In this document: in pieces, positions 2,921 to 45,600 of the stretch
How the letters are laid out: every line of letters starts with the position of its first letter
Numbering within the stretch: the first letter of the stretch is position 1
Origin: Bugula neritina
Lineage: Eukaryota > Animalia > Bryozoa
Direction of reading: 5' to 3'
DNA: 64,000 nt
NCBI GenBank assembly: GCA_964035545.1
Contig: OZ037766.1
Location: 15,242,722-15,306,721 of the forward strand
Program-made: the position numbers and the translations under genes
Notes under the pieces: model-generated
Database searches by the model: none
The model's input: only the letters and a program-made list of their open reading frames with translations
Told to the model about the DNA's origin: nothing

Positions 2921-3202
2921 AAACGGAATAAAAGCTAAACAATAATTACAATACTTCGGCATTAGAAAGCTACCCTAAGCTTAGCTATAATTGAAGGCAT
3001 TTAAAGTTACGCCAAGAGCTTAGTTATAATTACAGTATACAAAATGGTACGAAATATGTAATTATAATACTAAAGCACATAGTTACTAGAACTTTCCAGA
3101 ACATAGTGGTGACAACTCTCAAAATCCATTACAACAATATGAACCTAATATAGCAGTGATTTAGATTAATGGCCTATTCAATACCAGCTTATTTCTTCTT
3201 AC

Positions 3203-3776
3203 CAGAGAAAAGCAAGAAGCGACTAATTGGGTATCTGTAAGATGTCTCTCCAAGCCACTCATACTCATAATGTGACTCATCCCGGCTATCGAAAATGAGG
3301 TACTTGTACTGAACAGTTCGATGACTAATGAATGGCGCATGCCATGTGCCAGTCCATACATCATCAAGGCTACAGAAAAAATATTGTGTACTTGTATTTA
3401 ACAGCAGTTATTCTTTATTCAAACAAGAATCAAACTCATAATAATTTATTTTGAAGCAATATTTATCCAACAATTTATTCAAAAATTGGAAAATCTGTAT
3501 AAACTCAGTTGTTAAATAATACCAGAGTTGTGCTCCTGCTTAGAATACAAAAATAAATTTTGTTTTCCAGCTAATCAAACTAATTACTTACTTATAAAAA
3601 TTCTACACAGTAAAATGAGAATACTAGTTAATCTGTGAACTCACCCTTTATCCATGACTGCAATTGGCTGTGTAAAGTTATCTATACTGCATTTGATCTG
3701 AACCTCTGGCACCTCAAAAGTCTTGCATGCAGTGTTAGATAACACCATTTTAAAAGTTACAGGTATAAAGGCGCGC
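3203..3776 (-). CDS. Gene B CBM20-like domain exons (3645-3776, 3203-3369)
   Basis: VTF...W...YKY...EW...R pattern typical of the CBM20-like fold in the RNF213 N-arm; missed or mis-framed in the ORF track. Confidence 0.78.
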
Positions 3777-12700: not shown

Positions 12701-13701
12701 AGTGGTATGGTCATGTGCAGAGGAGAGATAGTGAAGAGGATATTAAATATATGACTGAGTTAAAAATAGAGGGGAAGAGAAAGAGAGGACGGCCCAAACG
12801 AAGATGGATGGACACGATAAGAGATGATATGAAGCGTTGGGGCCTTAAAGCAGAGGGTGCAGAAGACCGGGAAAGATGGCAGATGCTGCAGAAGACCGGG
12901 AAAGATGGCAGATGCTGATAGAGATTGGAAGCCTGCAGACCGGTCACCCGTACAGGACTACGACCGTATAGGTGTGAAAGGTTTGAAAGTACAATATAGG
13001 TATAGCACACAGCTTAGCAACAGACTTAGCTATTGTTAGAAAAGGTAATTTCCCTATTCAAAAATTTCCAGGGAAAGTATTTTATTAGCAACTAGTCGGT
13101 GTATATCCTAGTTTGGCATTGTCACCAAGCCTCAAGTATTTAAAAGTAATTACAATTTATGCAAACTATACTCTAATTTTGTCAACAAATTAAAAATAAA
13201 ACTATTATTGATGTAACTAGTTCATATGAACTTACCTGTGATATAATTATAACCACAATAAGCACATACATTGGCCAACTTATTGGTTTTAGGAGACCTT
13301 ACTCGCTCTTCACCACACTCAGGACATTGTAATACTTCAGAATGCTGCTGTGTGGTTATCGCCACTTGTTTTCCACAAAAGGAACAAAATTTGGGGTATT
13401 TTCCTGTTGAACTCTTTATAATATCCTCTCCGCAATGAGAACATTGGAGAGTTGGCACTTTCAAAACCTCAAAAGGGTTGGTTGGCTCATCACACTCAGG
13501 ACAATTTTTAGGATATTGGCCTTTCTTATTTTTCGACAGTTCCTCACCACAGTGAGGACATTTAACTACTTCCGCAGTTTGGACTTCAGGAACAGGCTCA
13601 TTACACTCTGGGCAAAATTTGGGATAAACCCCTTTTTTGTTTTTCCTTATGACGTCACCACATTTAGCATTGGGACAGTGTAGTTGCTCTTTGTCAGCCA
13701 T
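3203..13701 (-). CDS. RNF213: Gene B: 5' portion of an RNF213/mysterin-like paralog, continuing beyond the left edge. Exons ~13236-13701, 10941-11115, 10607-10722, 9360-9726, 8708-8769, 6515-8092, 6207-6269, 5951-6070, 5644-5721, 4801-5127, 4111-4153 (tentative), 3645-3776, 3203-3369
   Basis: GT-AG junctions join in frame. The last two exons (IPVTFKMVLS...; DDVWTGTW...VQYKYLIF...YEWL...ISRFL) match gene A exons 63381-63527 and 63122-63285 (LVTFKVFLS...; NGVWWANL...FSYKYAIY...FEWL...VNRYL) with identical intron phases 2/2/1. AAA and E3 parts are not visible, so the name is inferred from paralogy. Confidence 0.8.
6515..8092 (-). CDS. Gene B large low-complexity exon with YSGQPGTAPD decapeptide repeats
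   Basis: 558-aa ORF, phase-compatible splice sites, P/Q/S/G/H-rich. Confidence 0.85.
7050..7481 (-). repeat. Coding 30-bp tandem repeat, ~14 degenerate units
   Basis: Recurrent ggttgtccagaataatcaggggctgtgcca unit on + strand. Confidence 0.92.
9420..9535 (-). repeat. Coding 36-bp repeat x3 (EGPPTSDGLPVA)
   Basis: ccttcagcaacaggaagtc...cactagtggg repeated three times within exon 9360-9726. Confidence 0.85.
11485..12988 (+). mobile_element. 5'-truncated, decayed RTE-type LINE (RT and C-terminus) with 11-bp TSD; antisense in gene B intron
   Basis: GKAAGPDE, NYRGLKLL, QYGFQPG, FVDLEKAYD, GLHQGSALS, LFADD, RLQWYGHV, RGRPKRRW; stops and frameshifts. Short-repeat tail ggtgtgaaaggtttgaaa. TSD gtacaatatag at 11474-11484 and 12989-12999. 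Confidence 0.93.
13236..13701 (-). CDS. Gene B first coding exon: four tandem CxxC...CxxC zinc ribbons (double-zinc-ribbon-like)
   Basis: CPNAKC..CPEC, CPHC..CPEC, CSHC..CSFC, CPEC..CAYC. Acceptor ctgtag just upstream of the ATG; donor gtaagt. Confidence 0.88.
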
Positions 13702-13948
13702 TATAGTGAAGCTACAGAGAAATATCAACTAATAAAAGTCAACTTCTTAAACAAAGCCAACTGTGCATAAAAAGAATTAAGCATTAAAAATCATTTGTTA
13801 GAGGAAACTGCATATGTTTGAATATTAAATACAGCAAGCTACGCTTGTAAAATATAGGCAGAATGTAAATTCCGCAACTCTTTGCCTGGATAAATGGAAT
13901 TAGGAGAATAAATATGGAGAGTACACAAGAACATATTCCATAAATACT

Positions 13949-14381
13949 ATAACTGAGTCATTTTACTTAATTGAGTACACACTGGAAATCTCAAGTTTTT
14001 AGCTATTTTTCACAATTTAGCTGCTAATGAACATGGGTTTTTACCCAAAACTAGTAGAATATGAATGAACACACTTAAATAATCAAGGTTCTTCTTAATT
14101 TTGCTTGATTTCCCATGTTTTTTCCTAATTATTCGGCTACTTTTGATTGCAGAGTGTTATGAAAAAACCAAAACTCTCCGAAATCAAAAGTAGCTGAATA
14201 ATTAGCAAAAAACATGGGAAACCAAGCAAAATTAAGGAGAACCTAGATTATTTAAGTGTGTTCATTCATATTTTACTAGTTTTGGGCAAAAACCCATGTT
14301 CATTAGCAGCTAAATTGTAAAAAATAGCTCAAAACTGGAGATTTCCAGTGTGTACTAAATTAAGAAAAATGACCCAACTAT
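13949..14381. mobile_element. Foldback/MITE-like element: ~205-bp imperfect inverted arms with short spacer
   Basis: gtacacactggaaatctc...aacatgggtttttacccaaaactagt... mirrored by ...actagttttgggcaaaaacccatgtt...gagatttccagtgtgtac. Confidence 0.85.
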
Positions 14382-17684: not shown

Positions 17685-17734
17685 AATAGAATGAAGATCT
17701 AAGTTTATTTTTATATCCAAAATTGTATTAGTAC

Positions 17735-17867
<133 letters not shown>

Positions 17868-18695
17868 CTTTTTCTGCATAACTGTGTTTTCCTTTAGTAC
17901 ATAATAACATTTATGGCATATTATCTGAGTCACAACTATTGTATGTTATACAGGTTTTTCTGTTTGGCTTAGATTTTATAGTCTAGAGCGTTTCAAGTGC
18001 TACGAAATGTTTTTTGCCTGATAATGCATGCGTATATAATATTTACTGTGCTTAAAGTTCAGCTAACTGTGTGTGTATTACTGTTTCTGATTATAATGTC
18101 AAGAGTCGGCATTAATGTAACAAAGTTGGTGTTATACTGCAGTTGAAATGAATAGACAGATTTAAATAAAAAATTATCTATTAAACTGACTGTCCTAATT
18201 TATGTTTCATCAAATACTCCAATAGCAAAGGAATTTTGTAGGACTTGACCAAGATTACCAAGGACAGGCCAGTAAAGCCAATTTGCAGACTACTATACAG
18301 TTACAGTAGCATTAGCAGCATAACTCACAACTGAAAATAGGTCACACCAATAGATAGTAATTTGACTCTCTAGATGTATATTATAATTTGAAATAAAATA
18401 CAAAAAAACTATAGCAGTATATAAAAATATTGAGTTTGTTGACAAAAATATATTATACAGGTTATTAGGCAAAAATTTGAATTTTCAATTTTGTTTATGA
18501 AGCAACAACCATATAAAAATTCCATTGTATACTCAAAGCTTAAAAATAACATTGCATGCAGAGGCTAGCTTTACTTATGAATGGCTAATTGAAAACAATA
18601 AATCACGAGTGGCATAAATTGATTGTATTAAGCATGTCCATATTTTAAAGTGTAACTCAGCACTTCTAAATCATTTTTAATCATTCACTCTATTA

Positions 18696-21600: not shown

Positions 21601-24600
21601 CTGAGACAAAGCTACCAACTAAACCTTCCAAAAATGGCACTTCGTTCTTTTGCAGATGACAAAAGTGACCTATCCGAATTTTCTCAGCGTATTTTCTAGT
21701 CAGTTTACCATGAAACTGTGTATTCAGTATCTTGAGTAACCGCAGAATGTCTGGCAAATGTTGAACTGCTACAAATGCTTCACTAGACTCAACAAATGCC
21801 TTGAGAGATGAACATTCCTATAAAACACAAAAACAGTACAATTTCAGTTCTTTGAGCTGAAACCGCAAAAAAGTATTTTACAACTGTGTCTGTCTTCATT
21901 TCATGATACTATAAATACCTGCACATTGCTGAGGTGGTTTTGAACCATTGCCAGAGAAAGTGGACGTCTGAAACCCCACAGACCAGGCGAGGATGATACA
22001 TTGGAATTGTCTGCTGGTTGTTGTGCTGGAGAGAGAAGTCATCTGAGATCAACAGTATCAGCAGTTCTCAGTCTACCCCTCACATCCTCTATTCTCTGAG
22101 TCTAAAGATACGAACATCACAGATTCTTCAAACAAATCACTGAAATTATTACTTGATGGTCATAGATTGTCTGAGTTTATGATCTTCACAAGTTCAAACA
22201 AAATCTGTAATGAACTTGATTGTAAACACTCCTATAGTTTGTACTGAGTAACAGTAAGATTAGTAACAATATTTCCTTTAGTTAAATCACAAACATTAGT
22301 GATTCACATCTTCAACTTTTTGACTATTTAAATGAAGTCTCGAACATTGAAAATGGGAGCTGTTAAAAAGTATTTTAGGTAAAACTTTGTACCAGTATTT
22401 CAAAAACATGACTGAGCATAACAACAAATATGCATATAATCAATTTACATAACGAAAACCTTTCTTTCTGTGTAATTACAACACTTAGACCCCCCAGTAA
22501 AGATATTTTTTATCATAAAATTTAAACTTATACTCTTTGCAATTTTCGGAAAGCGTCCCAACCTGATGAATGGTAAAACACAACTATATGAGTGAAGTAG
22601 TGAAATCTTTAAGTGAACTAAATAAAGTCATGACATTCACAGTGTATCAGAAAAATATGAAGAAAAAATATAAATAATATAACCTACATCATAATTACAC
22701 ATGAATTATTTTAAACCGACATATCGAATATTGAGGACCAGTTACATCAATTCTGAGTACTTCTGAAAGCCAACATGAGTGACATTGGTGTATGTGATGC
22801 AACAATTTTGCTGATCTAGCACAGGAATAACTTAGCTGTAAGCTACCACAACTTCTCAATAGTTTTTTATTATAAATAAAACATCATCATAGCAATACTG
22901 GGTCTTTGAATAAGATTGATGGGAAACATTATATAACATTCAAGTTTTTATGGTAAATATACATCAGCTTTATGAGTAGGAGGCACTTGAAACATAGGGA
23001 TGTCAGTTAGATTGATTAACATTTAATTAAGGTTTAATACTCTTGATGTTAAAGATACAGCAGGTATGTTTCCCCACCTGGTTACGAATAGTAGGCTGAA
23101 TATAAACATTATCAAAAGTTTTCTCCCATTGTTTTCGTAGTTGAATAGAATCGAGTGTTTGATCAGCTCCACCTTGATTAGCTAGAAACAAAAGCTTATG
23201 ATTACTGGAGAAGCCTAAGCAATACTGCTAAACACCATCTTGGCAGGAGAGTGTAATGCCATGAGTATTGTATATTATTCATGTATTCTCCATGTTAGCC
23301 TTGCTGTAAATAGTTTAGAGTTAAAGAGCATGCTCAACAATATTCACTATACTTACAAACCTTAGTTAACCTTTGTGTGCATTTAACTACTGACATGTTC
23401 TACTATATTTGCATGAAGTATTTTAATGTTTACGAAACGTTGTACTATATGTCTACCATATTTTAACATATGTTTTTTTTTATATCTCATGTAAAAACAT
23501 TTAGCAGTTAAGCTCACAATAACAGCAAAATGTGTTGACCTGAAACAACTGGGCAAATGTTTATATTCAAACTAAAATAGAATTAAAAATTGAGATCACT
23601 ATACAGAAGCGATGAATAAGTGCAAACTTAAAAACAAAACATATACAACACACATTGTCAATGAAAAAAACATTCAAGTCAAGCTTCTCCCCAATTAGCT
23701 AATTAAAATGGCGACTGCAATTTTAAATTGTAAGTAAACAGGCCTAACTTTAACTGATATGGGTCATAGGCTACAATAAACAGTTGTTTGGTTTTTATAT
23801 CACATCATAGAAGAATTAGAACAATTTGAGTGACTAAAAAATCTAAGGAAATTTATTGGCCCCAAAGAACATTATGTTATAGCTAATAGTATGGAGTGCC
23901 AAATTATAGATCTAAACTGAAATTAAAACTATGAACAGAATAAGAGCATGAGTTTAAATAGAAAGAGTGGGTTAATTATGGGCTACTATACTACAAACTA
24001 GGTGCTATGAACGCAGAACAAAATCAAAGACCAGATTCCTACAGACCATGTTTTATCCTGTTGATTACATCATGAAGTAGTAGAATACAATCATCTGTAC
24101 TCTCAGCACAACACTGAGCAATCTGTTGTAAGTCTAACTGTATGTGAGCATCTATGAATGGTCGAACTTCCTCTACTCTTGCTAAGTTTGGGCGAATCAT
24201 TTGATATACCTGAGTTATACAAAGATAACTGTATGTTGAACAGACTAGCTGTGTACATACTTAATAGTAAGTGTAAACTGTAGGTTAATAATAGAATATA
24301 TTAAACAGATATGACTTACATGCTGGATGTTGAACAGACTAGCTGTGTACATACTCAGATGAGTCAAACACCTCAACACAGCACAGGAAAGAGAATTCAA
24401 GTCTCTCTCAGGGGCAGCAGCTCGGTTTCTACCGTCTGCCGTGCCGAGTATATGACCCGGTTGAGTTCTGGCAGCTCTGCACAACACACAAGTAAAAACG
24501 CTGCATCTACTTCATCACCGTAAAGAAATTGTGCATTTCACAATTTCATATTTTATATAGATCTTCGTACTTGAAACAAAACATATATCAACCAAGCAAG

Positions 24601-27600
24601 CTCCCATCAAAAAGCATACATAAATATGTATCTGTATAATTTACAACACTTACCGATCATTGGGGTCTAAAAGGGTGTTATTCGCTTGAGCAGCATAGCC
24701 CTGACCCCGTCCACCAATATTGGCACCACATTCTGGGCAAATTGTAGAGAAAACAGGCCTACCACACTAAAAATAGTTGCCGAATGTAAAAAACTAAGCC
24801 TAAAATCCTAGCTAAAATGCCAAAAAACCTTAAAAAAGTTATAGCAGTTCAACAAAATAAAACATATATTGCTATAGGTGTACTTACATTGCCAATGTAA
24901 TATGGATGACCATTTGGACATTCTACAACATAAAATTTATTATTAGCTACTATTTTCTTACAGTAGTAATTATATTAATCTAAATAAAAGAGATACAAGT
25001 AGTAAAAGTAATTGAACTTTATTACAAAAGCTGCATAAAAACTTTATTTAGATTACAATAGTAAGTGGGTAATAAATGTCAAGAATATTGGAGCACAAAA
25101 TATACTAAATGTCATAATTGTCTATATATGAGAAGTATGAAAAGGTATGGCAAATGAAAATACTAAGAATGACATATTATGCTTTAAAACTGTCATTTTT
25201 TAAACTTACGTTTTTATTTGAAAGCAATAGTAAAGTCAGCACAAACAATATTGGCTTGAAGTTGCATTAAAATACTGCACTGGACATTGCTTTACTAATG
25301 GTAATACGGTAACTCTAGGAATTAAATAGTAATTAAAACTATGTTTTACCTACACTTGAAATATTTCATAGTCGTTCCAGCTCGAAGTAATTAACAAATA
25401 AATATTATTTTTAACTTTGTGAATATTTTTACTCAGAGTGAAGCACATGACATGATCCTATTGCTATTAGTCATTATAATATATCATTGCATACTTACTG
25501 TATGCAGTAGGATTCTCGTTGTTAGTTTGTAGAGCTGCTCGGATCACTTCCCGCATAGCCTCAATTTGATTATCAACCATTGTTGGCAGGAAATGTTCCT
25601 AAATATTTGAGCACAGCAGCATGAGTGAATAAATAAATATAATGATATATGATATGATAACCAAAGCAACAATAAAAACAATGGCATTAAGTCGAATAAA
25701 ATGGTAGATCCTAGTTAGACCACAATCAAGATATTGTGATTTAGCAACTACATTGATACAGGGTGAAAAACCCAAGAGACAAGAAAATTAATTAGTGGCC
25801 TATAAGTGACTAATGAAATATGTGTAGTACTAATAGACATACCGCAGCCTGAAGTGGTTGGCTGATGATCTCAGAGAGAGGATACAGGTCAGCCATGACA
25901 CCTCCACTACACAGACAACTGTACAAGTTTAGAACTAACATAGACAAGTTAATTCCTTTAGACTGTTTCACGTCCATCTCTCTGGGTTGTCGATTGTCTT
26001 GCAGTAACATCTCCAGTAAAGTCTGCAAAATAGTCTGAATCAGTGACAAAAAGTCAACATAATTAACTTAATGGCTGCAAAGATAAATAAGACTGGGTGT
26101 TAGTTAGTAAAGCAATTTAAAAAAAAGAAAATTACAAGAGCATTAAAGTTATCAGAATTAGAGAGTTCATGAATGACACAAAAAATGAGCTTGACTGCTC
26201 AATAATATTGAACTTATTCAAATAAATTTTCAATCTAGCAAGCTAATAAAAAAATAATGTCAGTAAAACCGGCCTCTTTAACTACCAAGACTTTAAAATT
26301 TGAATCATGAAATAGATGTCAATGCAACACAATATAATATAGCAGCATTCAGTAAAATTTCAGTTACTTACTCTGTGTTGATTATCAAGAGTTGGAGTGA
26401 GGTGTTGAAGCAGTAATGTCGGAATATGCTGAGGAACTGGAACTCTCTGAGCAAAGGTACGAGTTATTCTGTTGAACAACACTTGTAACATCAACTGTGA
26501 TTGGTTGGCACAGGTCTATAAATACAACAGTAACCACACAGTTCATTTACGGAGCAGTTGATAATTAGTTATTAGCCCAAATATTATCTCATATCCATAA
26601 ACAATGTTATAACCACCCAAGGACCCACCTGGACAAAAGCAGTGATTGCAGCAGTTAACTGCTGTTCGTTGTTAGACTGAGCAATGATTTCATCTACAGA
26701 AGTTTTTATCTGGTTGTATCTCTCTTGATCTCCCAACACAGACAGAACATCTGGTACAGTGAAAGATTCCAAATCTCTTTTCAGATCATTATGTACCAGG
26801 AAACGACGTGGAGTATTGAGAAGGTCTTTGATGTATGCTTCACCATGAGTTGCTAACAACTGCCTAGCTATGAGGTACCTGAGTAACATTATACATTGTA
26901 GTGAGTTGCATAAAGAGCTAACGGTGTATAGAATAACCATTTGAAATGCAAAAAAAAAACAAATAATCTTATGAACCAGAGTATGATCCAGTAGACAAAT
27001 AATACCACAAACTGATGTAACAAACTGTCTAATCAACAAATATCCAGCACAGAAATAAACTTCTTCACCCACCAAGGCTGCTTGTTCCCCTCTCTGTTCA
27101 TTTTCTCCAGTAGCTTCTGTAATGATGACTCTAGTCCTCGTAGGCTACGAGCTGGCAGGTCCAAGTCAGAGGTGAGAAGGTCGACAGCCATGTTGATTAC
27201 CATGTGTAGTTTAGCTATGTTCTTCAGCATCTGCACTGATACTACGGCTGTATCATCCATGTGGCTGGTGAGCATCTTCAGTTGAATAGACAACTCTGCA
27301 GGATCCCTCATGACCTGTGGAGTTGTTAGATCCTAAAAGAAATTATCAACAGGTGCATTTCTGAACAGTTTATTGAATTCAACAAAATATGAAAATTAGG
27401 TACTCATCGAGTTATTTTCGTTGATGAAAACATGTGGTAAGCAAGTTTTAGAATAAGATCTCACCTTCCAGCAGTCTATAAACAGAACCATGGTTTGTAG
27501 CTGATGGTCTCCAGAATGTGGTGTAGACTGGAGAACATGATTCAGATAGCGCTCTACCAACTCCGTCTGAGAACATCGCAGCAACAGTTTGAGTAGAAAT

Positions 27601-30600
27601 GATCTGAGAACAGGGGTTGGATCCACCACTTCTTGACTGTTGAATAAACTGAACTGTTTGGTTGTCTCTCCACCCTTGGCAGCCACACAGTCCAGCAGCC
27701 ATCTTATGATCTCATCATCAGGATCTCTTTCCTCTTCATTGAACACCATGTCAGACACAAAAGCGACAAAAAAGTTGTTGATTCTCCTTCTTAAACCTTT
27801 GAAAGAAGCCAATCTTTCTTCTCTGTAGAAATGAACAGGTTTAATGATCAAGAGAGCATTATTTATAGCTTCTCACAAACTGCAATACACACACCACACT
27901 ACTTACTCTATATCATCTGCAGATGGCCTGTATTGAAAATCTGAAGGAATCTCGTCACCACAAATAGTGCAGAGTCTTCGGCCAATCACACAACTGTCAC
28001 ATATGATGTCATTGCATGGCAGTTGAACAGGTGAGTCCAGTGTTTGTTGACATATGGGACAGTCTTTTGGGCAGTCTCTAAAGTTAGCAAAATTTCATTA
28101 TATTTTGAATATAAACTTCAAAAGCAATGACATTGGAAGAGCAGATAAACTATATAACAAGATTTAACATGCATAAATAAATATATAATTTTACAGCTAC
28201 CCTGCAGGCCTACAGCCCTCTAGGTAAGGAATCAGTATACAACTTTATAATCCAAAATACCAAAATACTTACAAACCTCTTTCACATAAAATGCAAAATA
28301 TACAAGTCAAGATTTTTTTAATGTATAATTTTAGCCCCATTCCTTTTATTTCAGAATAAAACTTACTTGTAGAGACCTCGAATCCCTAGAGCTACAGTTT
28401 CTTTGAGCGATTCCACTACTCGATTAAAAGCTTGAAACTCACAAAACTCCACGCTGGTGATACTCTGTTAACAATAAAGTAATGTTATCAACCAATCAGC
28501 TGCTGCATATACAGTACCATGTATTTTAATTAAACTGTTGATTCTGAAAGATTATAATAAATTGCTATTAGTTTAGGCAGTATTCATTCTAGATATGCTT
28601 GCTGCTCACGCTAACACACTACTTATTATATATGTACTTATTACAAAATGCCTTTAACCTGCTTATATCAACTTGAAAAAGTTTCTGCTAAAAAGTTAAA
28701 ACAAATTATTCAAATTTAGCACTAAATCAAGCTAGCCAACTTGCTTACTTACTTGCAATGCAACATTCATGAAGGTTAAAAATACAATTCACTATATCAA
28801 TGTTGCATACTATAATTTAGATACTTGAGCTCAGGTTTTGCAACCATAACGAAGAAAATCACATCAAAATTAAATAAAATTACATTAAAAGAAGCTTAAA
28901 AATGCACACGAACAATAAAATAGTACATTTGAAATACAACATTAATAAAAAGTTTTAGCAACTCTTACTTTAACGAAGAAGGTGAGGTTGTAAGGCTTTC
29001 TGCGGCCATCTTTGCTTGCCACTTTTGGACTTGGTACGATGACATGTTCAACATATAACTTTTTGATCTTCAACCTCAACCATGTCTCTCTACAAGCCAT
29101 ACACGAACTGAGATGCATATTTTTGAATACAATTGCTAGTCTGCTATAACTATACTAAGAAACTCGAACTGAATAACATCACTTATTAAATTTGATCTTG
29201 TATAAGAGGAAAACTCTTAATGCTAATAAACTCAAGTATTCGAAGTAAGAGGAAGAGGAGATGTGCTTAACCCTCTAGGCCCCACCTTCTAAAGGAGGGG
29301 ACATATGAACTGAAAGCCATCTTTCTGTATCACCGTACAAGTTTTGTTTGAGACTCACCAAAATTTTACTCAATACGTTTTTGATATACCAACATTTTAG
29401 GATTTGAATATTTCTTACAACAAGTAACGTTTTAAACCCAGATGTTGAAAAGTTTTTGTACAACTGGTTAAAGTAGTCCAACAAAAAAGTACGTTAATTG
29501 ATTATTCATAATAGCACATGCTTGAAACTCCTCATTTATAATATCTGTAATATTTCGCTTACCTGTTCAGCTCTGCATAATCTGCCACTTGCTTCAACAC
29601 CTGCTCACACCTGTCTACTTTATTCACCCAACTCTCAGGTGCTGACAAAAGCGGTTTCAATTTTGCTTCTATAAAATCTTTCACCAGCCATTCCAGGGCT
29701 AGCAGATCGCATGACTGTGTAAGTAGAGAATGTAAAGTGGTGAAATGGTGCCAGCTTGTGTGTAAAATCTTTTAGCGAATTGATGCAAGATAATGTTTAA
29801 ATGTAGTCTCAGTTATCAATTATAACAAGTAATTAACAAGTTAAATTCAGTTTTACATACATCATAGTATTAGAAAACAAGAATACAATTATTGCTATGT
29901 CATCTTTGAGTTGAATTTGAAATGATTAAAGATTATGATTTAAGATCTGCATATCCTAAACGAAAATTTATACATTATGAATCACAAATATTTTCAGGGG
30001 TTCTTCTTTGCTAAAAATTATCCATTAAATAGCTAATGTTAAAAGTGGGTTTAACTGAGTCATCAGCCAACAAAATCAATGTTTACCTTTGCAGCTTCTG
30101 GTGTTTCTTCCATCTGACCTTTGACGTAACCAGTGAGTTTAGCTGAGTCATCAGCCAATGATACGAGGTCAGTCAGCCTCTCAAACACTGGCCTTAGCTC
30201 TTCATATGCTAAGTTGATGTGCACAAAAGTAGCTTTTTCCACTGATATATTTGATTTTATCCACAGCATAATAGAGTTTCCCACAATCTAAAGCATGATA
30301 AACTTAATATAGCTCATTGGTAACACAAACAGCCATAAATGCATGAGCACAGAAAGTAACAGTTGCTGAGGTAGCAAATACATAATTATGCTAAATGATT
30401 TTCGATAGCTATAAAACCTTCAGTAAACACAGTTTTAGCAATTACTTGGTTGTAGGCATTGTAAAAGTAGCCTCAATATGTACAAATAGTAGGAATAAGC
30501 AAAATTTTGAAGATTAATATATAATTAATTATATTAATATAATATACATTTATATATTAATATGAATTTCAAATATACTTATGAAATTTGCAAGAAATTG

Positions 30601-33600: not shown

Positions 33601-36600
33601 TGGGGTGTTGATATCTACCTAAATTCTCATAAAGCTACAAATCAGCTAAAACTTGCAAAGCAAAGCATTTACGTTGTGAATACCACTTCACACTAGAACT
33701 AAAACTATTCTCTAAAAATACAGATAGAATCTTAATATCATTTTACCATGGTTACGGAGAGTTTCTTTTAAATTCCTGAGTCGGTCATAGTGTTGATCAG
33801 CTTTGATGACAGACACTGCAGTAGGCAGACATCTTGTGATAATAAAGTTCAAAAGATCAGGTGCCACACTGTCACGTCTACCGACAGTTTGTGGAGCAGC
33901 AGGTTGGTATGTAGGAATGCCATCCATATTTTCTTCCTAAAACCACATAAAAATTAGAGATAATGCAGACACTTCAACTCAAAGTATAAACAGTAACAGG
34001 AAAAAAAAACAAAAACTGGGGGCCAAAGCCACTAACCCCAAACTAGTAAACTGTTGGACAAAATTGGCTATACCATCATTATTTCAAACCACAGCACCTA
34101 CTGTGTTCACATTATGTATTTTAGCAAATCAGAGCTTAAGTGACCAAATTATTTTGTATCTTAATTTCATTCTATGATGTAAGTTAAACAATTAGCCAAT
34201 CGAAGCTTGGTGTTTGTTCTATATCTGTTCAAAGTATTATGCGATTTCAGGTAAACATTTTAAATTCATTTATTTATATACAACTACAAATATTTTATTC
34301 ATTTCCGAACTAATAATAAAATTGATCAAAATCCAAATATAAAAGTTCAATATTGCAAATTTTTTTAGTTTTTATTACCATTATCATTGATATTTAGCAT
34401 TATAAACGAGAATTTTTTTATCAATTTATTGTTATTAACCTGTCCTAAACAATATAGTGTATTAATGGTTGGTCATTTATAATAATTTTTGATTACATCA
34501 GTTGCAACATTTAAAAAGTGCAAATTTAAAACCACAATTTTCACCCCACAGCTTTGTGCTGGTCACTGGCTAGATAGAAATCTTGCATTTTTCTAATAAA
34601 TTCTATATATTTTAAGTACCACAAGCTAAAAATTACCAGCTAGAAAAAATGAATTTAAGTATTCTCATGCCAAGTAAACACAAGTTTCATCGATACAGTT
34701 GATTGGCGACACATACCACTGACATGTTGTCATCCATACCATCAGCCTCTTCAGTTAGAAAAGCTAATATCTGACTGGGACTGAGATGAAGACATTCTTG
34801 CAGAGATGGCAAACTAACTTCAGGAGATTTCGGGTCATCAATATGAACAGTTCTCCATCTTCCACCTGTCAGCAAACAAAATAATAATACAATAGAATCA
34901 GCATAAGATTATGCACTAAAGTATAAAGTTCTAAAACTATGAAGAACTTAGTAGATAATATTTCCAAAATTGAGGGAATTTAAAAAAAATTCTATTATAT
35001 AAAAAAGGCTGTTACACGTTAGACATGACAATAATTAATATAAAACTGAGTAAGTATTTGAAGTGTGCCCATGTTACTAGTTGGAAGCAGTAGTACCTAA
35101 ATAAAAAGTTTTAAAAATGGAAAATTACTGTTGAAAGCAAATATTAGGCATCAACACCAGCCAATAGTAAAATAACTGTTGAGCTACAACACCTTGTGAG
35201 CCGGTGAAGGTGTGACCTCTGGGAATGTTCAAGAGAAGAATAGTGTGAGTGGGAGTGTGTTCTCTTTCCTGGGCAGCCTCACTTTCACGCTGAATTATAA
35301 ACCTGACTGAATCCAGGAGCTCTGTGTTCTCATTGGCCAATTCACATTGGATGAGTAACAGCTTACACTTGTATGAAGCCTCATACACTAATCTGTAGCA
35401 GAGACACAAGATGTGGTCATGGTTCATAACTAGAAATTGAACTGCAAATTCATCCAAGAGCATTGACACGAGTAATGATTTAAGTTTACTTATCTTACTT
35501 AAAAACTTCACTTTTCTGCTCAACTGACTAAACAAACTTCAAAATTTTGTCTAATTGCAGTTAGAATTGTTTAAATAGATTAAAAATAAGCATCATAAAT
35601 TATTTTGAGATACATTTTGATAACTAAAATTTGACAAAATATTATGTCTTTAATATGATTAAACATAGGAACTGTGTTAAATCCATCACTTTAAAAATAC
35701 AATTTTCAGTTTTACCTCTATACAAACCTACTTAATATTTAAAACCAAACTATTAAGTCTCTATTCGCAAAAAGTAGATTAATCAATATCAACTAAGGTA
35801 ATGCCAGTGCTAGCAGTTAATAACTGATGATGCAATGAAGTCAAAATGAGTTTTAATATTAATAATCTTTAATCGACTTGATAAAAAAGCGGTTCCCACC
35901 TTCTAATTAAGTGTGCTACTTTTAAAGCCTGATGAGACTTTAATTAGGATTTCTCACTCTGAATGTAAACTTGGCTAAATTCAGCCAACTTATGGACCTA
36001 ATTTATCAGGGGTAAAATCCCATACATATTGGGATATATGACTGGCATATAAATTAACAAATTCAGTTTATATTATTGCTCACCTAATATAGTCTGTGAA
36101 CTGATCTTCTTTAGCGAAATCTTTTAAGAAATGTGACCACATTGCGACATCAGCGTGCACATATTTTAATCCACGAGCTAACAGCGCCACATCCTGTTGA
36201 CCAAGCAGCTCGGCGAAAGAGGTAACCTTTTAAAACCATAAACACAAAGACTTCAATTTTTAGTTAAACTTAAACAAAGACTGGTAGCATTTGAGAACAC
36301 AGGGAAACATCACACTTATATGAGAAAGATTTATACAAACACAACACAAATATCACAACATGTGTAGTGTTTGAACTTTTCAGCTGAAGCACATGGATGA
36401 GGTAAGATACCTGGATGTAGAGGTTGGTAGAAGAAGTCAGGTTTACTTCCTGACTGAGATATTGAATTAGACTTTCATGAGATTGCTGAGTCATATAAAC
36501 ATCCTGAATCTGACCAGCCTCAGCTTGTAGGCGTGTCCTGTCTAGGCGTAGCACCGCCTCTCCAGTAGCACACTGAAGCATGTAAAACTTTGCCCTTTCC

Positions 36601-39600
36601 AGCACCTGGAAAACAATTCGTAAATGAGAAATATGCTTAATTTCACTGCATATGGCAAGCAAGAAAACAACTTTCAAAACTACATACTTCTTTATGCCAT
36701 CCAGGAGTTGCCTGTTCAACATCAGCAGTTGCTTGTCTAACGGCAATAGCAGTTGTCTCGGTGCTGTACCCAATAAAAGTATTCTCAGTGGTGCAGTTCT
36801 CAAAGTACTGTCTGTAACAGACAACACACCACGTACAGATGTGGACAGAGAAATATTCTTAAGTTATTATAAATCAATGGTGCAACTCAGCTAGCCCTTG
36901 TTTCGAAACTATCAATAACGCATTTCATTAAATGCCAATTTGTGTACATAACTAAAAAAAATGAATATGTATTAATGTGGTTGTGGGCCTACAATATGTG
37001 TCAAGATCCTTATTTATTTTCAATATATAAAATGTAGTAAAACATTAGCATCTGATTGAGAAAATTATAAAACCTTTTCTCTAAAGCAGCTGTATCTATT
37101 GTCCACTCAAACTCAGCATCAAGCACCTCATCACAGTCATCAACAGGACATTGGTGAGTGTCAGCTCTGAATATTCTCTCCCGGCAGCAGGGGCCAATGT
37201 AGTGATCACATGGCAACTTGAAAGGTTGGTTCAGCTCAATATCACATCCTAGGCAATGCGACGGACAGACATTTCTAAAAATACAAACATAATGGCTAGT
37301 AATGTTCACTTAAAGCAATATATAAATATAAATCTAACATGTCAAATAAATATTTAAACAAAGACATGTAAGTGTATAGAGTGTAAGAATGATTCTATAA
37401 CATCACTACTCAATTCAGGTATTGCTGTAAAACATCGCACTCAACCTGATCACTAAACCATTTAAATGTAGATTATAAGATGACTACTTGTGAACAGATG
37501 AGGGTGTGACAAAATTCTGAGCCCATTTCTCCAGCTCTCTCTTCACTTGCTTCTGTTCATCTGTGAGAAGTGAAGTAGCAGAAACGTAGTGTTTCTCCAG
37601 ACGGTTAATGAGAGGAATTGGAAACTGGGAGTGTACTTTGTTCTTGTCGGCTATCACCACCAGTCTGTTGATAAACCACACTTTTTAAAAATAAGATTAT
37701 GATAAAATACTGCAAACTGATAGGCAACTTTCCAACTAATGCAGCATTAAAACAACAGCTAGCACTAACTTTAACATAACATAAATAATAGTCAACTGGT
37801 ACAAATAAGCTGATCATATTTCTTGTAAGTGAAACTAGCAGAATGGTATAACATCATAACGATAGGATATATAAGCATAGCTCCAGTACCCAGGATGCAT
37901 AGGCAACCAGAATTAGACATCAGAACTAAGCAATATATTATTCGGGGTATAAAAATAGTCGTCAGTGAAACATATACTTCACAGCTAACAGCAACAAAAA
38001 CAGCTCTCTCACCGGAACTTGTCATTGACGAAAGTCTTGACTCTGTGAGTGCCAAGCCCAAGATCTACAAACTTTCTGTCCCCCCAAGTAGAGAAGTACT
38101 GGTTGAGGGCGTCATATAGACTCTCGTACAGATCATCAAGATTGAGTAGGATCACAGGTTTACCCATGTCCATGCATGTCTTTATTCTGTAGATGTTGTG
38201 ACACACCTACCAATGTATTCCAGAGTCTGGTGAGTGGAAGCATGCGAAACTAATTGTAGGTACAACAATTTGATTCTCAAACTTCGATAAGAGATATAAA
38301 CTGACACTACTGAACACAACAGAACTATACCAGAACCGCTTCTGTGTAATAGAAAGTCATATATCTGGACTAAGTGTAGGATAGAACCAACCTGAGTGTA
38401 GGTTACATCATCTCTAAACTTGCTTCCAAACACGACCTCTGGCTGCTGGTTGTGAGTTGAGAACTCATCCATTATGATACTGAGGACACTGAGATTCTCT
38501 GTCAGAATCAGCAGATATCTGCTCTCCATCCTACAGTATTTATCATACAGTATTAGAAGTCTATTTATATTCTATCATATCTATATGTTAAAGTAATGAC
38601 AAACATCAATGGCTATGGTAATTTACCCAGGAGCTGCAGTATCTTGGCCAGAAAGACTGGACTGAATCAGGCCAATAGAGTCAATAGGAGGACGGCCATC
38701 TTCCTGATGAGGAAGTGTGTCTAATGCCCTGCAATGTTCCCTGAAGACATCCATTGGGTCGAATGAATCAGTGTCAAACCCTCCAAAGTTACGCCGTATG
38801 CTGTGCTCTAACTGATTTCTGTTAATGGTGCCATTGTTGCCAGACGCAAAACTTGTCACCATTTTCATCAAACTAAAAATTATAATAATAGAAGAACAAG
38901 TTAAAAAAATGAATAGAGTTTCCAAGAAAACAGTGTTGAAGAAATAAGGCGCAGTTGTTTCTAGTGGAGAAGCCCGTCATTCAACTACTAAGTAACATTT
39001 AAAACTGGAAATAGAATCTTACAAAAAACTGCCTGTTAAATCCTGAAGTACATAAGTTCTTTATTTTCAAAATTAATAAAATTGTAGGGTTCAGCAGTCA
39101 AACTTTATCACATTTAGAAATTTTTACGCGCAAAAATGATTTTTATTCATCAAATTACATCTACAAACCTATAGAAATCTCGCAGTCCATAAAATTCTGT
39201 TAGATTTCTTGCTTCTGGCTTTTGCACTTCACAAATCTCCAAGTAACCCTTAGCCAATGGCGCAATGTAGTTGGCAAAATTTTGGAAAGTCTTACCACCA
39301 ATTTCTCTGCAAAAAATTAACCAGGTTAGTGTGGCCAACATAGCTGAATCCGCGAATTTCGAAAATGACAATTGGAAAACACCTATTTAGAAAATGGACA
39401 ATTGGAAAATAAATATTTGGAAAATGACATTTGGAAAATGAAAAATATTCAACATGGCCTAGTCCAGATGGGGCATTTAGTATCTGGTCGAGTTCAAAAA
39501 GCTTTTTGTAAATGTGAACAATTGTAAATTAGAACTACTCGGTAACTAATTCTACTTCCATGATAGCCTAACTGATTTGGCAATTATATTTATTTTTAAA

Positions 39601-42600
39601 AGCTTTTTGGAATCAACTAGATGTCATACAACCCCTCAGGACTATACCATGTTGAATATTTTTCATTTTCCAAATGTATATTTTCCAATTGTCTATTTTC
39701 CAATTGTCCTTTTCCGAATGTCATGTCACCAACATAGCTAGCCCAACAACAAAAGTACTTCACAGGTTTTATTAGTAATAAATACTTGGCAATCTGTTCC
39801 AGCTCCAAAGGTTGAGGAGTTCCTCTCTGGACAAATATGCCACGGTTCATCTTGGCTGGATCCAGTGCCCAGTTAGAGATGCCAACAAAAGCACACTTCA
39901 TGTATGGTTCTGGTGTTACACTACTGTCTTCACAACCATCTTCTAGCAGAGGGTGTAGAGTCTATACAAGAGTATGCAGTATTATATAATGTTATAAGAC
40001 TCAAGCTGAAAAACCAATTAAGCATTTGCTGGTGCAATTATCTGTTAGTTAATGACTAGTCTATGAGTTATACCTTAAGTGGCATGTTTTCAGAATCTTC
40101 AGCCAATCCGACTTCATCAAGTACCACAACTGAGACAAATTTCTCTAGATCCTGCCCTTCCTGGAAGTTGGCGCACTGCTTAAAGACACCAACTATTCCA
40201 GATGGTGTGGCATATCGGCTGCATTGGAAGGACACCATGTAAGTCTACAAAAATATTTCGCAGTTTTTATTATGTTCTGTAGTTAATTTTTTATTCAAAT
40301 GATAAATTAAATATTTTGTTTGCCATTAAGTGACAGGAATCAAGCATGTGGTTGATAGTGGAGTTTGAGGCAGTCAGTACAGAGTATCACCGAGTAGCAC
40401 CATGCTAGACTAATTAATGCTGCATTATACTTTATTGCATTGCTACTACACTAGCTTTCAGAAAAAAGCTACAAAATTTTTTCAGGAAAAAGCTGCAAAA
40501 GCTTTCAGAGAAAAAGCTGCAAAAAGCTTTATGTATGTATACTGATCTCACTCACACTCTCTGCACAATAAACTTATTTATCATAATTCTATAACTAAAT
40601 TATTGAGAAAAATTTGCAAACTTTCTGAGTTATGACTTTGCCAATAAACCTACTTGGAATTTTATCATGAGATATGAATCGCATGTTGGTAGAAAAACAC
40701 AATAAAATTGGTGCAACATGATGATAATAGATAGGTGTAAGATTACTGTTAGTAGATAGGGTACGTTAATTAATGCTGAGCTTCTAAAGCTATTATTTTA
40801 TCTTACTTCGACGCAGCAGGCCACATTGTTATTGCATTGAGAATGTTTATAATTTTTTTCAATTGACAATTGTCTTTTTTTTCTAAAGGAAATCAATTAA
40901 TATTTGTTGATAAACTTGCAGAAAATCCAGCTTTTGATTAATTCCTGTAAAAACTTGACTGATTCAAACAGCACATAAAACTGCCTTACATCAAGGGTAA
41001 GCAAATAGGCAATATAAATTGGGTGTAAATTTTTCAACTCAAATCCAAAGCATTAATGTTGACTGCATTTATCTTAGCTATAACTATGATCATAATTACA
41101 CAAAGGTTTGAATTTGAAGAATTATAATTACAATAAATTTAAATTGTGAGTGCTGCTAACACTGAAATAGGCAGTCTACAAACTCAGCGGTCAAATATTT
41201 TGAGTGACATTATGAGACTTGCAAGGAAAAAATGTACTTTGGCTCCTGCAAATAAATATGGCTAACATATAACCTCTCTATCAACATATTGTAACTGATA
41301 GCATTGTTGACTGTATAAAATATTTGAAATCTACAAATATTAAAATCTTAATTACCCTTTTCAAGTTTTTGAAAAAATCACTGTGTGAACTTCCACCTTT
41401 CATTGCATCCACAACCATAGCTTTGGACAGAGATTTAGAGCTGCCAGGTTTTCCAACCAGGAAAAGAGGAATTCTATTCTCAATGCAGACAATCATCATG
41501 AAGACATTTTCTTTCAGAGCTTTGTTCTTAGCAATGTTCTTGTGCACATCTGTGTTCACTACTTCGTTGATGAACATGTTTTGACATCTGCAAGCATAAG
41601 TAAAAACAAAGTCTGATCTTAGAACAATATAACACACCATGACTACCACAAAGGGCACCAGCTTGTTCAAATTCATATGGCATATGTATCTTGTTAGTGT
41701 TGCTAAAGCTATAAAGTGGTTGATAAAAAATCACAGTTAATACAAGACCACAAACTCGTTATAAGTTAGATTATACAAAATTGAAAGTGAAGAAACCTCC
41801 CACCTGTCAATTTCAGCTCTGATAAAACCTTGAGCTTCAATACCAGCTCTCCCCATGAGCTCTCCAATTTTTGGTGCGATGTATTCGATGTATTGCTCTC
41901 TGGTATCTTCTTCTAGTCTAGCAATATAGCAGACTGCTAGAGCCAGTACCAAACTTCTGGTGGTGTAGTCCTTCTATAAAACATGGATATGGTAAATGTG
42001 AATGCATCCCAAAACTTATTGAAAATTGCCTGTATGTTTCTATGACTTTTTGCTTTTGAAAAAATCAACTTATAATTTTAGAATAATCAACTAGTTGTTT
42101 ATGCTTTAGTTGTGGGTGTATGACTAAGCTTGTAAAATATAAAACTGAATTCATCCATGTGCATTGGAAGTCAGTTTATTCTTAAAGCCTAGTGACAGTA
42201 ACAACAATTATATGTCTTACGTTAGGCATGAACAGAGGCAACTCTTCATCCGTATCCTCATAATCTTCATCATCACTGGACTCCTCGACAATCTGGTCAC
42301 CATCCATAGCTGGGAAAATGTAATCTCGCTGACTATAAAACCAGTTAGTCACGTCTAGCAGTCTTTGTACGTCTCTTAGGCTAACAAAGCTGCACTCATC
42401 CTACAAATATTTATTCAAAACAAATTGGCTAAACAAAAGTATCTGCAAAACATGATAAAATAGAGTAGCTAATATTTGAAAAAATATCTCATCACAACTA
42501 CAGCAAACTTCAAAATAAAAAAACTTCCAAAATATTCAATATAATGGCCTCCTACTCACAATATTAGTAAAATAACTATGAAGTTTATTATCAAAGTGCT

Positions 42601-45600
42601 TAAATGTTTTCTACTACCTAGCATTTCTTATTAAACTAGAACATTTGAGAATCCTTAAAAATAAGCCTATATTATAATAAATTTTTTTTGTATAATAAGT
42701 AAATAGGAAAAGTACTTCTCAAATTTATCATATACGATTCCACGATACATTTTAGAAATTCTCTATTTATGTTATGAAATAGATTCTTGCAGTTATGAAA
42801 AAACATGCTGGTCAGAAAGTTTTTTCAAATATAGGAAGTTATATATGACTAGAGACGTCTGAATTATTCACAGTAAACATTTACCTCCTGCAGTCTCATA
42901 AACGCTTGAGTCATAGAAAGGATTTCTGCAACCACTGATGTGTGATTCCCAAAATGCATGCCGCCTTGCCTAGCCATAGATGCAAAATTCTACACAACAA
43001 AAACACACATCCAACAAAAAAAGCAGACAAGATTATTGTGATCACACAACTAACATTCAGGGTAATAAAATTTCTAACATATTATAAACAGATTTAAAGA
43101 TTACTTCTTAGAAAGCAAACCAATTTTTAATAAAATAAAATTCAAAATTCAACATTAGTAATCAACTTACAAACTTGGCAATCATCTGTCTGATATAAGC
43201 TGTCTCTACATCTCCAGCTTGTGGCTCACCATTTGGTAGAGGTGGTGCAGATCTCAGAGTACCAAAGTCCCAGACTAGAGGAAGTAAACTCTGGGGAAGA
43301 GCCTGAACTCTGTACACCAGATGTCTCATCGGTATCTGACCTACAATTTTCAACTTATCTTGGTTATTATCTTAAACTAATTTAAAAGTTACAATTTTCT
43401 TTATTATTAGAAAGCTATATATATTCAAACTAGAATAATGGTTTGCAAACTGTAAAATATATAAATATAAAAGTGTAAAAAGACAAAATAGCTCAAGAGA
43501 CAGCATTTAGGTATCCTAAAATATTGCACAATGCATTTAAATGATAGCAGCTATTTTTCTCCAATAGCATGGAATATGTTTCATACCTGCAGTATGTAAG
43601 TTAAACAAACCTTACACCTTATAACTATAAATCAAGTGCTAAGCGAAGAAAAAAACTTTTTAAAAATTACTGACCAAACTTATCTGTAGTCTCTGAATCA
43701 TCGACATTGTAACCAAGTCCAGCTTTTCTTAGTTTTTCTATCATGGCTTCAGAATGTCTGAAATTATGAGTCCATGGCACGTGTAAATAATTGATTTCCA
43801 AAAACATTGAAATATGGACAAAACATCATATATATAACGCACAATTTTACAAAGTTTATAACCTAATAAGAATGTTCTTCTGCTCACAGAATAACTTAAT
43901 TGTATGTGTACAGTTAGTTTAGCTAGTGCAATTAGATATTACTGAGCATACTTTCGGTAGGGATTACAAGCTGCTATGATCTTTAGTCCAGATGTTTTGT
44001 CTAGAGGTCTTCCTCTCATTCTACCATCACAGAGTATCTCTTTGACTAAACCAATAGCTTCTGTAGTGTTGGCCTCATCAAGGAATAAAATTGTGTAGAC
44101 AGAAGGTACCTGTAAAGTGTTAAACATTTCCCGAAAGTTACATGACATCACATAATAGAATTGTATGATAAACATGTGTGAACAGCTGTCCACATTGTAG
44201 AATACATATCCTTACAACTATGAAATTGTGATATCAATAAATAATCTGGTGCTAAAAAACTAGCCTACTAATTGTAAATTTAAATTGTAAGACACCTAAT
44301 TTCTTAGATAACAATTAAAAAGACCTGCTTATTGTTACTAAAACAGTGTTTAGTAAAAAATTTACTTGGTTTGAGTCAAACTTAGCAGCGTATTCTTGGC
44401 AAATCTGCTGATTCTGAAGAGCCAGTTGCTGCCCTTCTTCAACTTTCCTGATAATATCTTCTTCAGTTGTCCCACCATGAATCTGCAAAACACAAGCATA
44501 CATTTAGCAGTACCATTATAATACACCATAAAAGCCAAATTAATAACAGATAATAAATGGATAAAAAAACATTTAGAATCACAAACCTTCACAATAATCA
44601 TGGTCTTAATTTCTTCCTTCAGAGCAGTTGGTACTTGTAACTTAGACATGAACTCTATAAGTTTAGTTTTACCACAACCAGTCTCTCCCATGATTATCAC
44701 AGGAATATCAACTCTGTGCAAGTATAAATAAAGGATAAATATGAAAACTCCGTAATGACTGAATGATATCAACTTTGTATGGATAAAAGCAAAATATTAT
44801 ACTGTCACAAAAATACTTATTCATATACTGTGGAAACTACTTTGCCATAATATTTCAGATGTTCTGGTTAAGTAACATTTACTAAGAAAGATTGATGTTA
44901 AGCTAATATATTATCTCAGTATATGATGTGTGACTAGTATCTTATCTCAGTATCTGATGTATGACTAATATCTTATCTCAGTATCTAATGTATGACTAAT
45001 ATCTTATCTCAGTATCTAATGTATGACTAACATCTTATCTCAGTATCAGATGTATGACTAATATCTTATCTTAGTATCTGATGTATGACTAATATCTTAT
45101 CTCAGTATATGATGTATGACTAACATCTTATCTCAGTATCTAATGTATGACTAATATCTTATCTTAGTATCTAATGTATGACTAACATCTTATCTCAGTA
45201 TCAGATGTATGACTAATATCTTATCTTAGTATCTGATGTATGACTAATATCTTATCTCAGTATATGATGTATGACTAATATCTTATCTCAGTATCTAATG
45301 TATGACTAATATCTTATCTCAGTATCTGATGTATGACTAATATCTTATCTCAATATATGATGTATGACTAATATCTTATCTCAGTATATGATTTATGACA
45401 AATATCTTATCTCAGTATCTGATGTATGACTAATATCTTATCTTAGTATATGATGTATGACTAATATCTTATCTTAGTATCTAATGTATGACTAACATCT
45501 TATCTCAGTATATAATGTATGACTAATATCTTATCTTAGTATCTAATGTATGACTAACATCTTATCTCAGTATCAGATGTATGACTAATATCTTATCTTA

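Follow-up and report, generated by a model that had tools for sequence, protein, structure and literature searches.

Among described proteins, the closest system is vertebrate RNF213 (mysterin), a giant AAA-E3 ligase that is represented by the mouse cryo-electron microscopy structures 6TAX and 7OIK and by the human structure 8S24. In the mouse protein, the AAA core spans residues 1775–3405 and includes the insertion IR5 of the AAA5 large subdomain (3063–3103), while the hinge occupies residues 3406–3588 and the E3-RING residues 3940–3999 (PMC7311170, Ahel et al.). The same study showed that a mouse deltaRING variant of RNF213 retains wild-type auto-ubiquitination and that the RING is dispensable for ubiquitin transfer. 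The role of the RNF213 RING is an open question: it is not needed for transfer in mammals and yet it is conserved and is a target of a bacterial effector, namely IpaH1.4 of Shigella (PMC11958729). Here, a stretch of 64,000 nucleotides of the bryozoan Bugula neritina (contig OZ037766.1, positions 15,242,722 to 15,306,721; hereafter the window) was analyzed. Its minus strand contains an RNF213-like gene that starts near 63 kb and extends down to about 18.7 kb. Within this gene, the exon at 37074–37274 encodes a variant RING-type zinc finger, called RING2 in the following, at a site that contains no RING in mouse and human RNF213. The explanation that we regard as fairly probable is that RING2 would be an old duplicate of the RING exon of the family itself, which is now most likely a zinc-stabilised, non-catalytic module in AAA5.

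The initial annotation of the window had proposed a 201-bp stop-free exon with phase-2 introns on both sides, in front of the TFIGYS exon, and inspection of the borders and of the open frame bore this out. The exon and its neighbours are arranged as follows:

37488 to 37664, minus strand: upstream exon (..VVIADKNKV..FPIPLINRLEKH..), end of the AAA5 large subdomain, acceptor given by the RNA joint 37664->38013
37275 to 37487, minus strand: upstream intron, 213 nt, phase 2, GT at 37487–37486 and AG at 37276–37275
37074 to 37274, minus strand: RING2 exon with a length of 201 nt and phase 2-2, which encodes a variant zinc finger of the C3HC4 RING type, identified by AG/GT borders and open frame
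36812 to 37073, minus strand: downstream intron, 262 nt, phase 2, with an RNA joint of exactly 262 nt
36686 to 36811, minus strand: downstream exon (QYFEN..TFIGYS..), with the RNA joints 36603->36686 and 36814->37077

RING2 is thus flanked by the NRLEKH and FIGYS exons of the RNF213-like gene, with an AG at 37276–37275 before it and a GT at 37073–37072 after it, as read on the minus strand. The upstream exon ends at 37488 on two codon bases (..CAC AA, followed by gt), and the RING2 exon contributes the third base of the shared codon, 66 full codons, and two end bases (..AAA AG, followed by gt). The downstream exon begins at 36811 with a third codon base, and the junction from the RING2 exon is therefore also of phase 2. 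In the frame that is set by the phase-2 junction with the upstream exon, the 67 codons are free of stops; the chance of such a run is about 0.007 per frame, as calculated from the base counts of the window. Because the exon is conserved elsewhere and is transcribed, it is not a chance open reading frame (ORF). The exon is symmetric, and the reading frame would survive its skipping. However, the exons 37488–37664, 37074–37274 and 36686–36811 are all symmetric with phase 2-2, and four successive introns are of phase 2. Phase 2-2 is needed for exon shuffling, but it is not a distinctive signature here because the neighbouring exons have it as well.

Transcription was analyzed with RNA contigs from four runs (X1–X4) of three studies, some of them labelled as symbiont metagenome, which were placed on positions 34500–40400 of the window. 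RNA coverage was confined to the exons and was about zero over the introns, and most of the listed joints read CT..AC on the plus strand, which equals GT..AG for a gene on the minus strand. Both features show that the contigs represent spliced RNA. The joint of exactly 262 nt across the downstream intron was present in X2 and X4. In X1 and X3, loose ends of the downstream exon ran into the letters of the RING2 exon, with an exact match to the nearest paralog, L002, and one mismatch to the window. Contig 22 of X4, which has a length of 887 nt, spans the entire RING2 exon together with three downstream exons, and it extends for a further 45 nt, which agree with the terminal part of the upstream exon in the window and not with that in L002. 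An origin of the RNA contigs (95–99% identity) solely from L002 was considered and was rejected, because the upstream part of this contig fits the exon end of the window. As contig 22 fits the window and some loose ends fit L002, the window gene and L002, or their alleles, are apparently both transcribed with RING2. No skipping joint from about 36811 to 37488 was found among the joints listed for the RNA contigs of the four runs. The region 37074–37274 is spliced into the mRNA, most probably as a constitutive coding exon. The RNA contigs from all three studies include the exon with its junctions, and they give no support to the proposal that it might be an optional cassette.

RING2 is not peculiar to the window gene, but was found in eight of nine RNF213-like paralogs and in other bryozoans. 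A search of the own genome (216,009,554 bases) with the exon revealed seven further RING2 copies with identities of 43–88%. A copy of the NRLEKH exon precedes each of them at a distance of a few hundred bases to at most about 1.5 kb, and AG/GT borders and phase 2-2 are present at all eight loci. The site of the exon is equivalent in the eight paralogs, and the total number of paralogs is at least nine (loci L001–L022). Five RNF213-like genes form a cluster of about 370 kb on contig C2 (15.07–15.44 Mb), in which the window is located, and the other paralogs with RING2 are located at C2:26.88 Mb, C3:24.20 Mb, and C4:18.80 Mb. The ninth paralog (C2:26.10 Mb; locus L023, C2:26098000-26107999) contains the NRLEKH and the FIGY exons, and the intervening intron is of phase 2, is 895 nt long, and contains no RING-like ORF at the RING2 site. 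Judged by its sequence, the window gene is a member of an expanded RNF213-like family in B. neritina. A tandem expansion of this kind is a pattern typical of fast-evolving, immune-type families. In L023 (about 3136–4462 and 5693–7540 of the locus), the site without RING2 is followed further downstream by a repeat of about 1.8 kb that reads ..HTSVFIILC.. in two frames.

For the analysis of other species, a profile of the eight RING2 copies was compared with 1.84 billion representative proteins, which yielded 25 matches. These comprised exon-sized, unnamed metagenome ORFs, the protein XP_067940320.1 of Watersipora subatra, and P0025, a generic RING protein. An RNF213-like protein of another phylum was not among the matches of this search; this does not prove absence in other phyla, since a very divergent RING at the site would score below the threshold. 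The order of NRLEKH exon, RING2 exon and FIGYS exon is kept in three metagenome contigs and on a chromosome of W. subatra. XP_067940320.1 (613 aa) starts at a methionine inside the RING2 exon, and its RING2 reads directly into the FIGYS segment. The Watersipora NRLEKH exon falls into the range of a separate model of 783 residues that ends upstream of RING2. The Watersipora locus (OY755163.1, 20917290-20953693) thus appears to be divided between two models, with the break just ahead of RING2. In mouse and human RNF213, in contrast, the NRLEKH helix segment runs directly into the FIGY segment, and the alignments with the chains in the PDB showed no insert between them, whereas the bryozoan gene has a RING fold of 67 residues at this position. 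This agrees with the statement of the initial annotation that vertebrate RNF213 has a single RING, in the E3 shell. These comparisons indicate that a known family has acquired RING2 as a lineage-specific insertion, which is shared with another bryozoan and is not private to the window gene. It had been allowed for that a dual RING at this site might turn out to be widespread or already described. No description of a second RING in any RNF213, or of an RNF213 with such a RING in invertebrates or bryozoans, was found in the literature, whereas the arrangement is indeed shared by the bryozoan paralogs and Watersipora.

The 66 full codons of the RING2 exon encode the motif C-x2-C-x11-C-x-H-x4-C-C-x11-C-x4-C, with an extra CPxxC lead-in ahead of it. 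In an alignment of 27 RING2 sequences, the eight predicted zinc ligands have the order C-C-C-H-C-C-C-C; five of them (C10, C22, H24, C30 and C42) never vary, and the other three (C7, C29 and C47) are conserved to at least 90%. The Cys residues are therefore kept despite strong divergence, as had been proposed. The features of Evolutionary Scale Modeling (ESM) indicate C3HC4, and the ESM Atlas yielded only generic C3HC4 clusters. An AlphaFold2 (AF2) model based on the 27-sequence alignment had a predicted local distance difference test (pLDDT) value of 76.6 and a helix at residues 28–37, in keeping with the RING fold, which comprises two short hairpins and a central helix. When this model was compared with the PDB using Foldseek, all of the 50 matches listed were RING/U-box domains or proteins containing one (TM 0.5–0.72). 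The leading matches were the RING of TRAF6 (TM 0.65, root mean square deviation (rmsd) 2.4) and the RING of human RNF213 (9jta_C; TMt 0.73, rmsd 1.8, 31% identity). In agreement with the earlier claim of a RING fold, RING2 thus models as a RING. Sequence searches of the PDB, whether started from the exon alone or from the profile, retrieved only weak generic RING matches (E >=0.01) without a preference for vertebrate RNF213. TRAF6 (2JMD, 5VO0), the best structural match, is also among the best sequence matches and has a similar ..CPVD.. ending, but it has an Ile at the contact to the ubiquitin-conjugating enzyme (E2) and a regular ligand spacing, and RING2 has neither. As the sequence E value is only 0.015–0.02, the resemblance to TRAF6 is one of fold and does not argue for common descent.

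RING2 is under purifying selection. The ratio of nonsynonymous to synonymous substitutions (dN/dS), which had been suggested as a check, was 0.06–0.24 for four close pairs. For distant pairs, dS was saturated and dN was 0.4–0.7, and the ligands are invariant despite an overall identity of 36–54%. Depending on the copy, loop 2 comprises between 9 and 24 residues, and RINGs tolerate such variation. In one metagenomic copy (L026, 1139–1618), the part of loop 2 that separates the CC pair from the last Cys pair is enlarged by about 60 Asp/Glu-rich residues. The CC pair itself is altered in some copies. It is CG in P0003, which has lost the second Cys and is not part of the 27-sequence alignment in which C30 is invariant, and it is HC in P0024 and P0014, where the first Cys is replaced by His.

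The flanking exons were used to locate RING2 within the ATPase ring. In the PDB, the only matches of the upstream exon were RNF213 chains of mouse and human (E 3e-11), and the continuation in Watersipora matched RNF213 chains at E 2e-23. The upstream exon aligns to residues 3107–3158 of mouse RNF213 (7oik_A), the FIGY segment follows within about 10 residues, and the Watersipora segment homologous to the downstream exon aligns just past the match of the upstream exon. A comparison of this alignment with the mouse domain boundaries places RING2 in AAA5 just after the large subdomain, directly past IR5. As inferred from the residue numbering, RING2 would lie at the transition from the large to the small subdomain of AAA5, with about 250 residues of the AAA core still to follow. 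The proposed insertion at the end of the AAA+ motor therefore had to be corrected, because the site follows mouse residues of about 3107–3158 and the core ends at 3405.

The likeness to vertebrate RNF213 is not restricted to the flanking exons, but extends to the Walker A motifs of AAA3 and AAA4, a probable E3-RING exon and an RZ finger. All searches on the window gene were made exon by exon. The respective features are:

44365 to 44796, minus strand: ORF with the AAA3 Walker A motif (GETGCGKT), from the six-frame listing
41284 to 41730, minus strand: ORF with the AAA4 Walker A motif (GKPGSSKS), from the six-frame listing
27907 to 28077, minus strand: exon of the canonical E3-RING (171 nt, phase 2-2), which begins with a CPxxCxxC layout
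24888 to 24974, minus strand: first half of the RZ finger (Pfam PF20173 positions 9–24, E 0.0011), coordinates limited by the ORF
24653 to 24766, minus strand: second half of the RZ finger (PF20173 positions 25–53, 31.1 bits versus a cut-off of 27), coordinates limited by the ORF

The canonical RING exon had been described as phase 2-2 with a layout similar to that of RING2, and this could be verified. It matched Pfam zf-RING_2 with an E value of 1.8e-5 and 25.4 bits, compared to a cut-off of 27.3. In the window copy, an Asp replaces the His ligand (..LPCND.., compared to ..LPCNH.. or ..LPCGH.. in the paralogs), and the last pair is C-x2-C, compared to C-x4-C in three paralogs. A relationship of RING2 to the RZ finger of the same gene was also considered, as the core H-Y-I-G-x-C-C of RING2 resembles G-H-P-Y-Y-I-G-x-C-G of the RZ finger (RZ: H-x-Y-x-I-G-x-C-G). 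It was rejected as probable chance; PF20173 had no match on RING2 sequences at E <=1, and the RZ spacing differs by two residues.

The comparison of the two RINGs of the family was most informative about the origin of RING2. An alignment of the RING2 and the canonical-RING alignments with hhalign resulted in a probability of 97% and an E value of 7e-11. A genome-wide search with the RING2 profile retrieved only the eight RING2 exons and, ranking behind them, seven exons for canonical RNF213 RINGs (E values between 2e-8 and 4e-3), in a genome that holds at least 149 C3HC4 matches. With the RING2 hidden Markov model (HMM), the canonical RNF213 RINGs scored 26.9–43.3 bits, versus at most 20.6 bits for the 30 best generic RING loci of the genome. 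In the bryozoan paralogs, the canonical E3-RING and RING2 are both encoded by a single exon of phase 2-2 and have in common the CPxxCxxC lead-in, an LPC motif and, in several paralogs, a C-x4-C last pair with ..DCG.EI, which belongs to a shared ending C-[PS]-V-x-D-C-G-x-E-I. They differ in that the canonical copies have H-x2-C-x2-C as well as the hydrophobic position of C-P-[IVM]-C, whereas RING2 has H-[YF]-[IV]-G-x-C-C and mostly a Gly before the second ligand. The profile closeness, the shared oddities and the phase-2 intron in the paralog devoid of RING2 make an old intragenic duplication of the RING exon the best reading. The family's own phase 2-2 E3-RING exon would have been duplicated into a pre-existing phase-2 intron. 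This event would have happened once, before cheilostome diversification and the divergence of Bugula and Watersipora, and the paralogs would have inherited RING2 as the family expanded. The duplicate origin had already been proposed in the initial annotation. The greater closeness to the canonical RING of the lineage than to generic RINGs and the phase-2 intron speak for it, but the matching phase, on which the proposal had been built in part, is undistinctive. Alternatively, RING2 could have been captured from an unrelated RING gene, e.g., a TRAF-like gene, by exon shuffling. The best PDB sequence matches, i.e., TRIM34, TRAF6, TRIM56 and RNF168 instead of vertebrate RNF213, and the CPVDD ending that resembles TRAF6 would be in line with a capture. 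However, within the same genome the RING2 profile picks only the canonical RNF213 RINGs, with E values down to 2e-8, and the low scores of the 30 generic RINGs, the lead-in and ending common to both RINGs and the hhalign result all argue against a foreign source, which we therefore regard as improbable.

With respect to function, the main hydrophobic E2 contact of active RINGs is located between ligands 1 and 2, and their last ligand is followed by a basic linchpin residue. In the 27 RING2 sequences, the E2-contact position is a Gly in most copies and otherwise Ala, Met, Ser, Arg or Lys. In the window copy, C47 is followed by D-E-V and thus not by a basic residue. Catalytic dual-RING activity is doubtful because the main E2-contact residue is usually Gly, and of the proposed dual-RING plus RZ ligase, the RZ finger is supported by its profile match. 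The loss of the E2 contact, the shifted fifth ligand (H-x4-C-C versus H-x2-C-x2-C) and the dispensability of the canonical RING in the mouse make a non-catalytic RING2 most likely. A binding or structural role is, on balance, slightly favored. RING2 would then serve as a zinc-stabilised module, seated on the half of the ring formed by AAA4/5/6, and ubiquitin transfer would remain with the RZ/E3 module, as in mammals. It would be an unlikely, yet still serious, alternative that RING2 is a catalytically competent second RING, so that the ligase has two docking sites for E2, one of them on the ATPase ring. All eight ligands are kept under purifying selection, the fold is nearest to active RINGs such as that of TRAF6, and the Pro after ligand 7 is conserved. 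Nevertheless, nearly all copies have Gly, Ala, Ser, Arg or Lys at the contact position, a linchpin-type basic residue is missing from the window copy, and in the mouse not even the canonical RING is necessary for ubiquitin transfer (PMC7311170). A switch between single-RING and dual-RING forms by optional splicing of the exon is less probable again than a foreign capture. It would be compatible with the symmetry of the exon and with the one paralog that is entirely without it. However, the neighbouring exons are equally symmetric, purifying selection keeps the exon in eight paralogs, and all informative RNA contigs of the four runs include it, with no joint of about 36811–37488 among those listed; they leave room for a minor skipped isoform. 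The least probable option, to which we give almost no weight, is that the insertion serves no function and is neutral or decaying. The lack of recognition by Pfam and the odd CC ligand pair, with CG in one metagenomic copy, might be taken as signs of decay, but dN/dS values of 0.06–0.24, invariant ligands at 36–54% identity and retention in eight paralogs and several species argue against a dead insert, which the conservation largely rules out.

Several observations weigh against the interpretation of RING2 as an included, zinc-binding and non-catalytic duplicate of the family RING. In textbook RINGs, the spacing is H-x(2-3)-C-x2-C and the last pair is C-x2-C. RING2 deviates from both, with H-x4-C-C and a final pair that is mostly C-x4-C and C-x2-C in only a few copies, and this departure makes it a variant RING. 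The binding of two zinc ions is a prediction from the ligands. The Pfam RING models gave only 10.2 bits for the window RING2, compared to a cut-off of 27, and none of the matches listed for the 27 RING2 members was above the cut-off, the best E value being about 5e-4. The suggested Pfam scan thus failed to recognize the domain. The confidence of the AF2 model is only moderate. In the reverse test, the HMM of the canonical RING gave 13–36 bits for RING2 versus up to 25.5 bits for generic RINGs, a weaker separation, and the shared 2-2 phase has little weight for the origin because it is common among adjacent exons. The Pro after the seventh ligand, a usual E2 contact, is retained in RING2 and would be compatible with E2 binding. 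At the RNA level, assembled contigs lose rare isoforms, and most contigs differ from the window by 1–7% and represent other alleles, strains and partly the closest paralog L002. Lastly, an in-frame TGA is present at 22039–22041 on the minus strand; if it is exonic, the protein of the window copy may end ahead of the C-terminal domain.

Because the curated Pfam RING models stay below their cut-offs, standard annotation will miss RING2, and the NCBI gene model of Watersipora is split exactly at the RING2 exon. Several RINGs in one polypeptide that are not all catalytic are also found in the multi-RING ligase Mind bomb 1 (MIB1), for which a preprint stresses the third RING (bioRxiv 10.1101/2024.03.01.582834). 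In contrast to the C-terminal, tandem RINGs of MIB1, the extra bryozoan RING is embedded in the AAA+ ring, far from the E3 module. The retention of a RING duplicate under purifying selection in AAA5, next to the regulatory IR5, in eight paralogs and at least two cheilostome families represents a natural experiment on the purpose of the RNF213 RING. A speculative option, which we consider very improbable, is that RING2 is an integrated bait, i.e., an E2-blind RING duplicate on the ATPase ring that catches microbial effectors aimed at the RNF213 RING. If this were true, binding of an effector would spare the E3 module or would become a conformational signal linked to the ATPase, and it would explain why the duplicate was retained in a tandemly expanded, immune-type gene family.

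A few further features of the window are unrelated to RING2. Positions 1–2445 (minus strand) contain ORFs of a non-LTR (long terminal repeat) retrotransposon, with an endonuclease-like N-terminus and a reverse-transcriptase-like part, which run off the start of the window. At 13225–13728 (minus strand), an ORF of 168 aa consists of repeated zinc-ribbon-like units (CP.C ... KNKKG.YPK.CPEC.EP) and represents an unrelated neighbouring gene or a fragment thereof. Downstream of the RNF213-like gene, positions 14013–14156 (minus strand) share an ORF-like element (..RKKHGKS.KIKKN.DYLS.FIHILLVL.KNPCSLAAKL) with an intron of the paralog L023 (3697–3816), and this element is probably a dispersed repeat. 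At about 17700–17900, a long microsatellite of the dinucleotide type is present, which reads (YI)n in translation.

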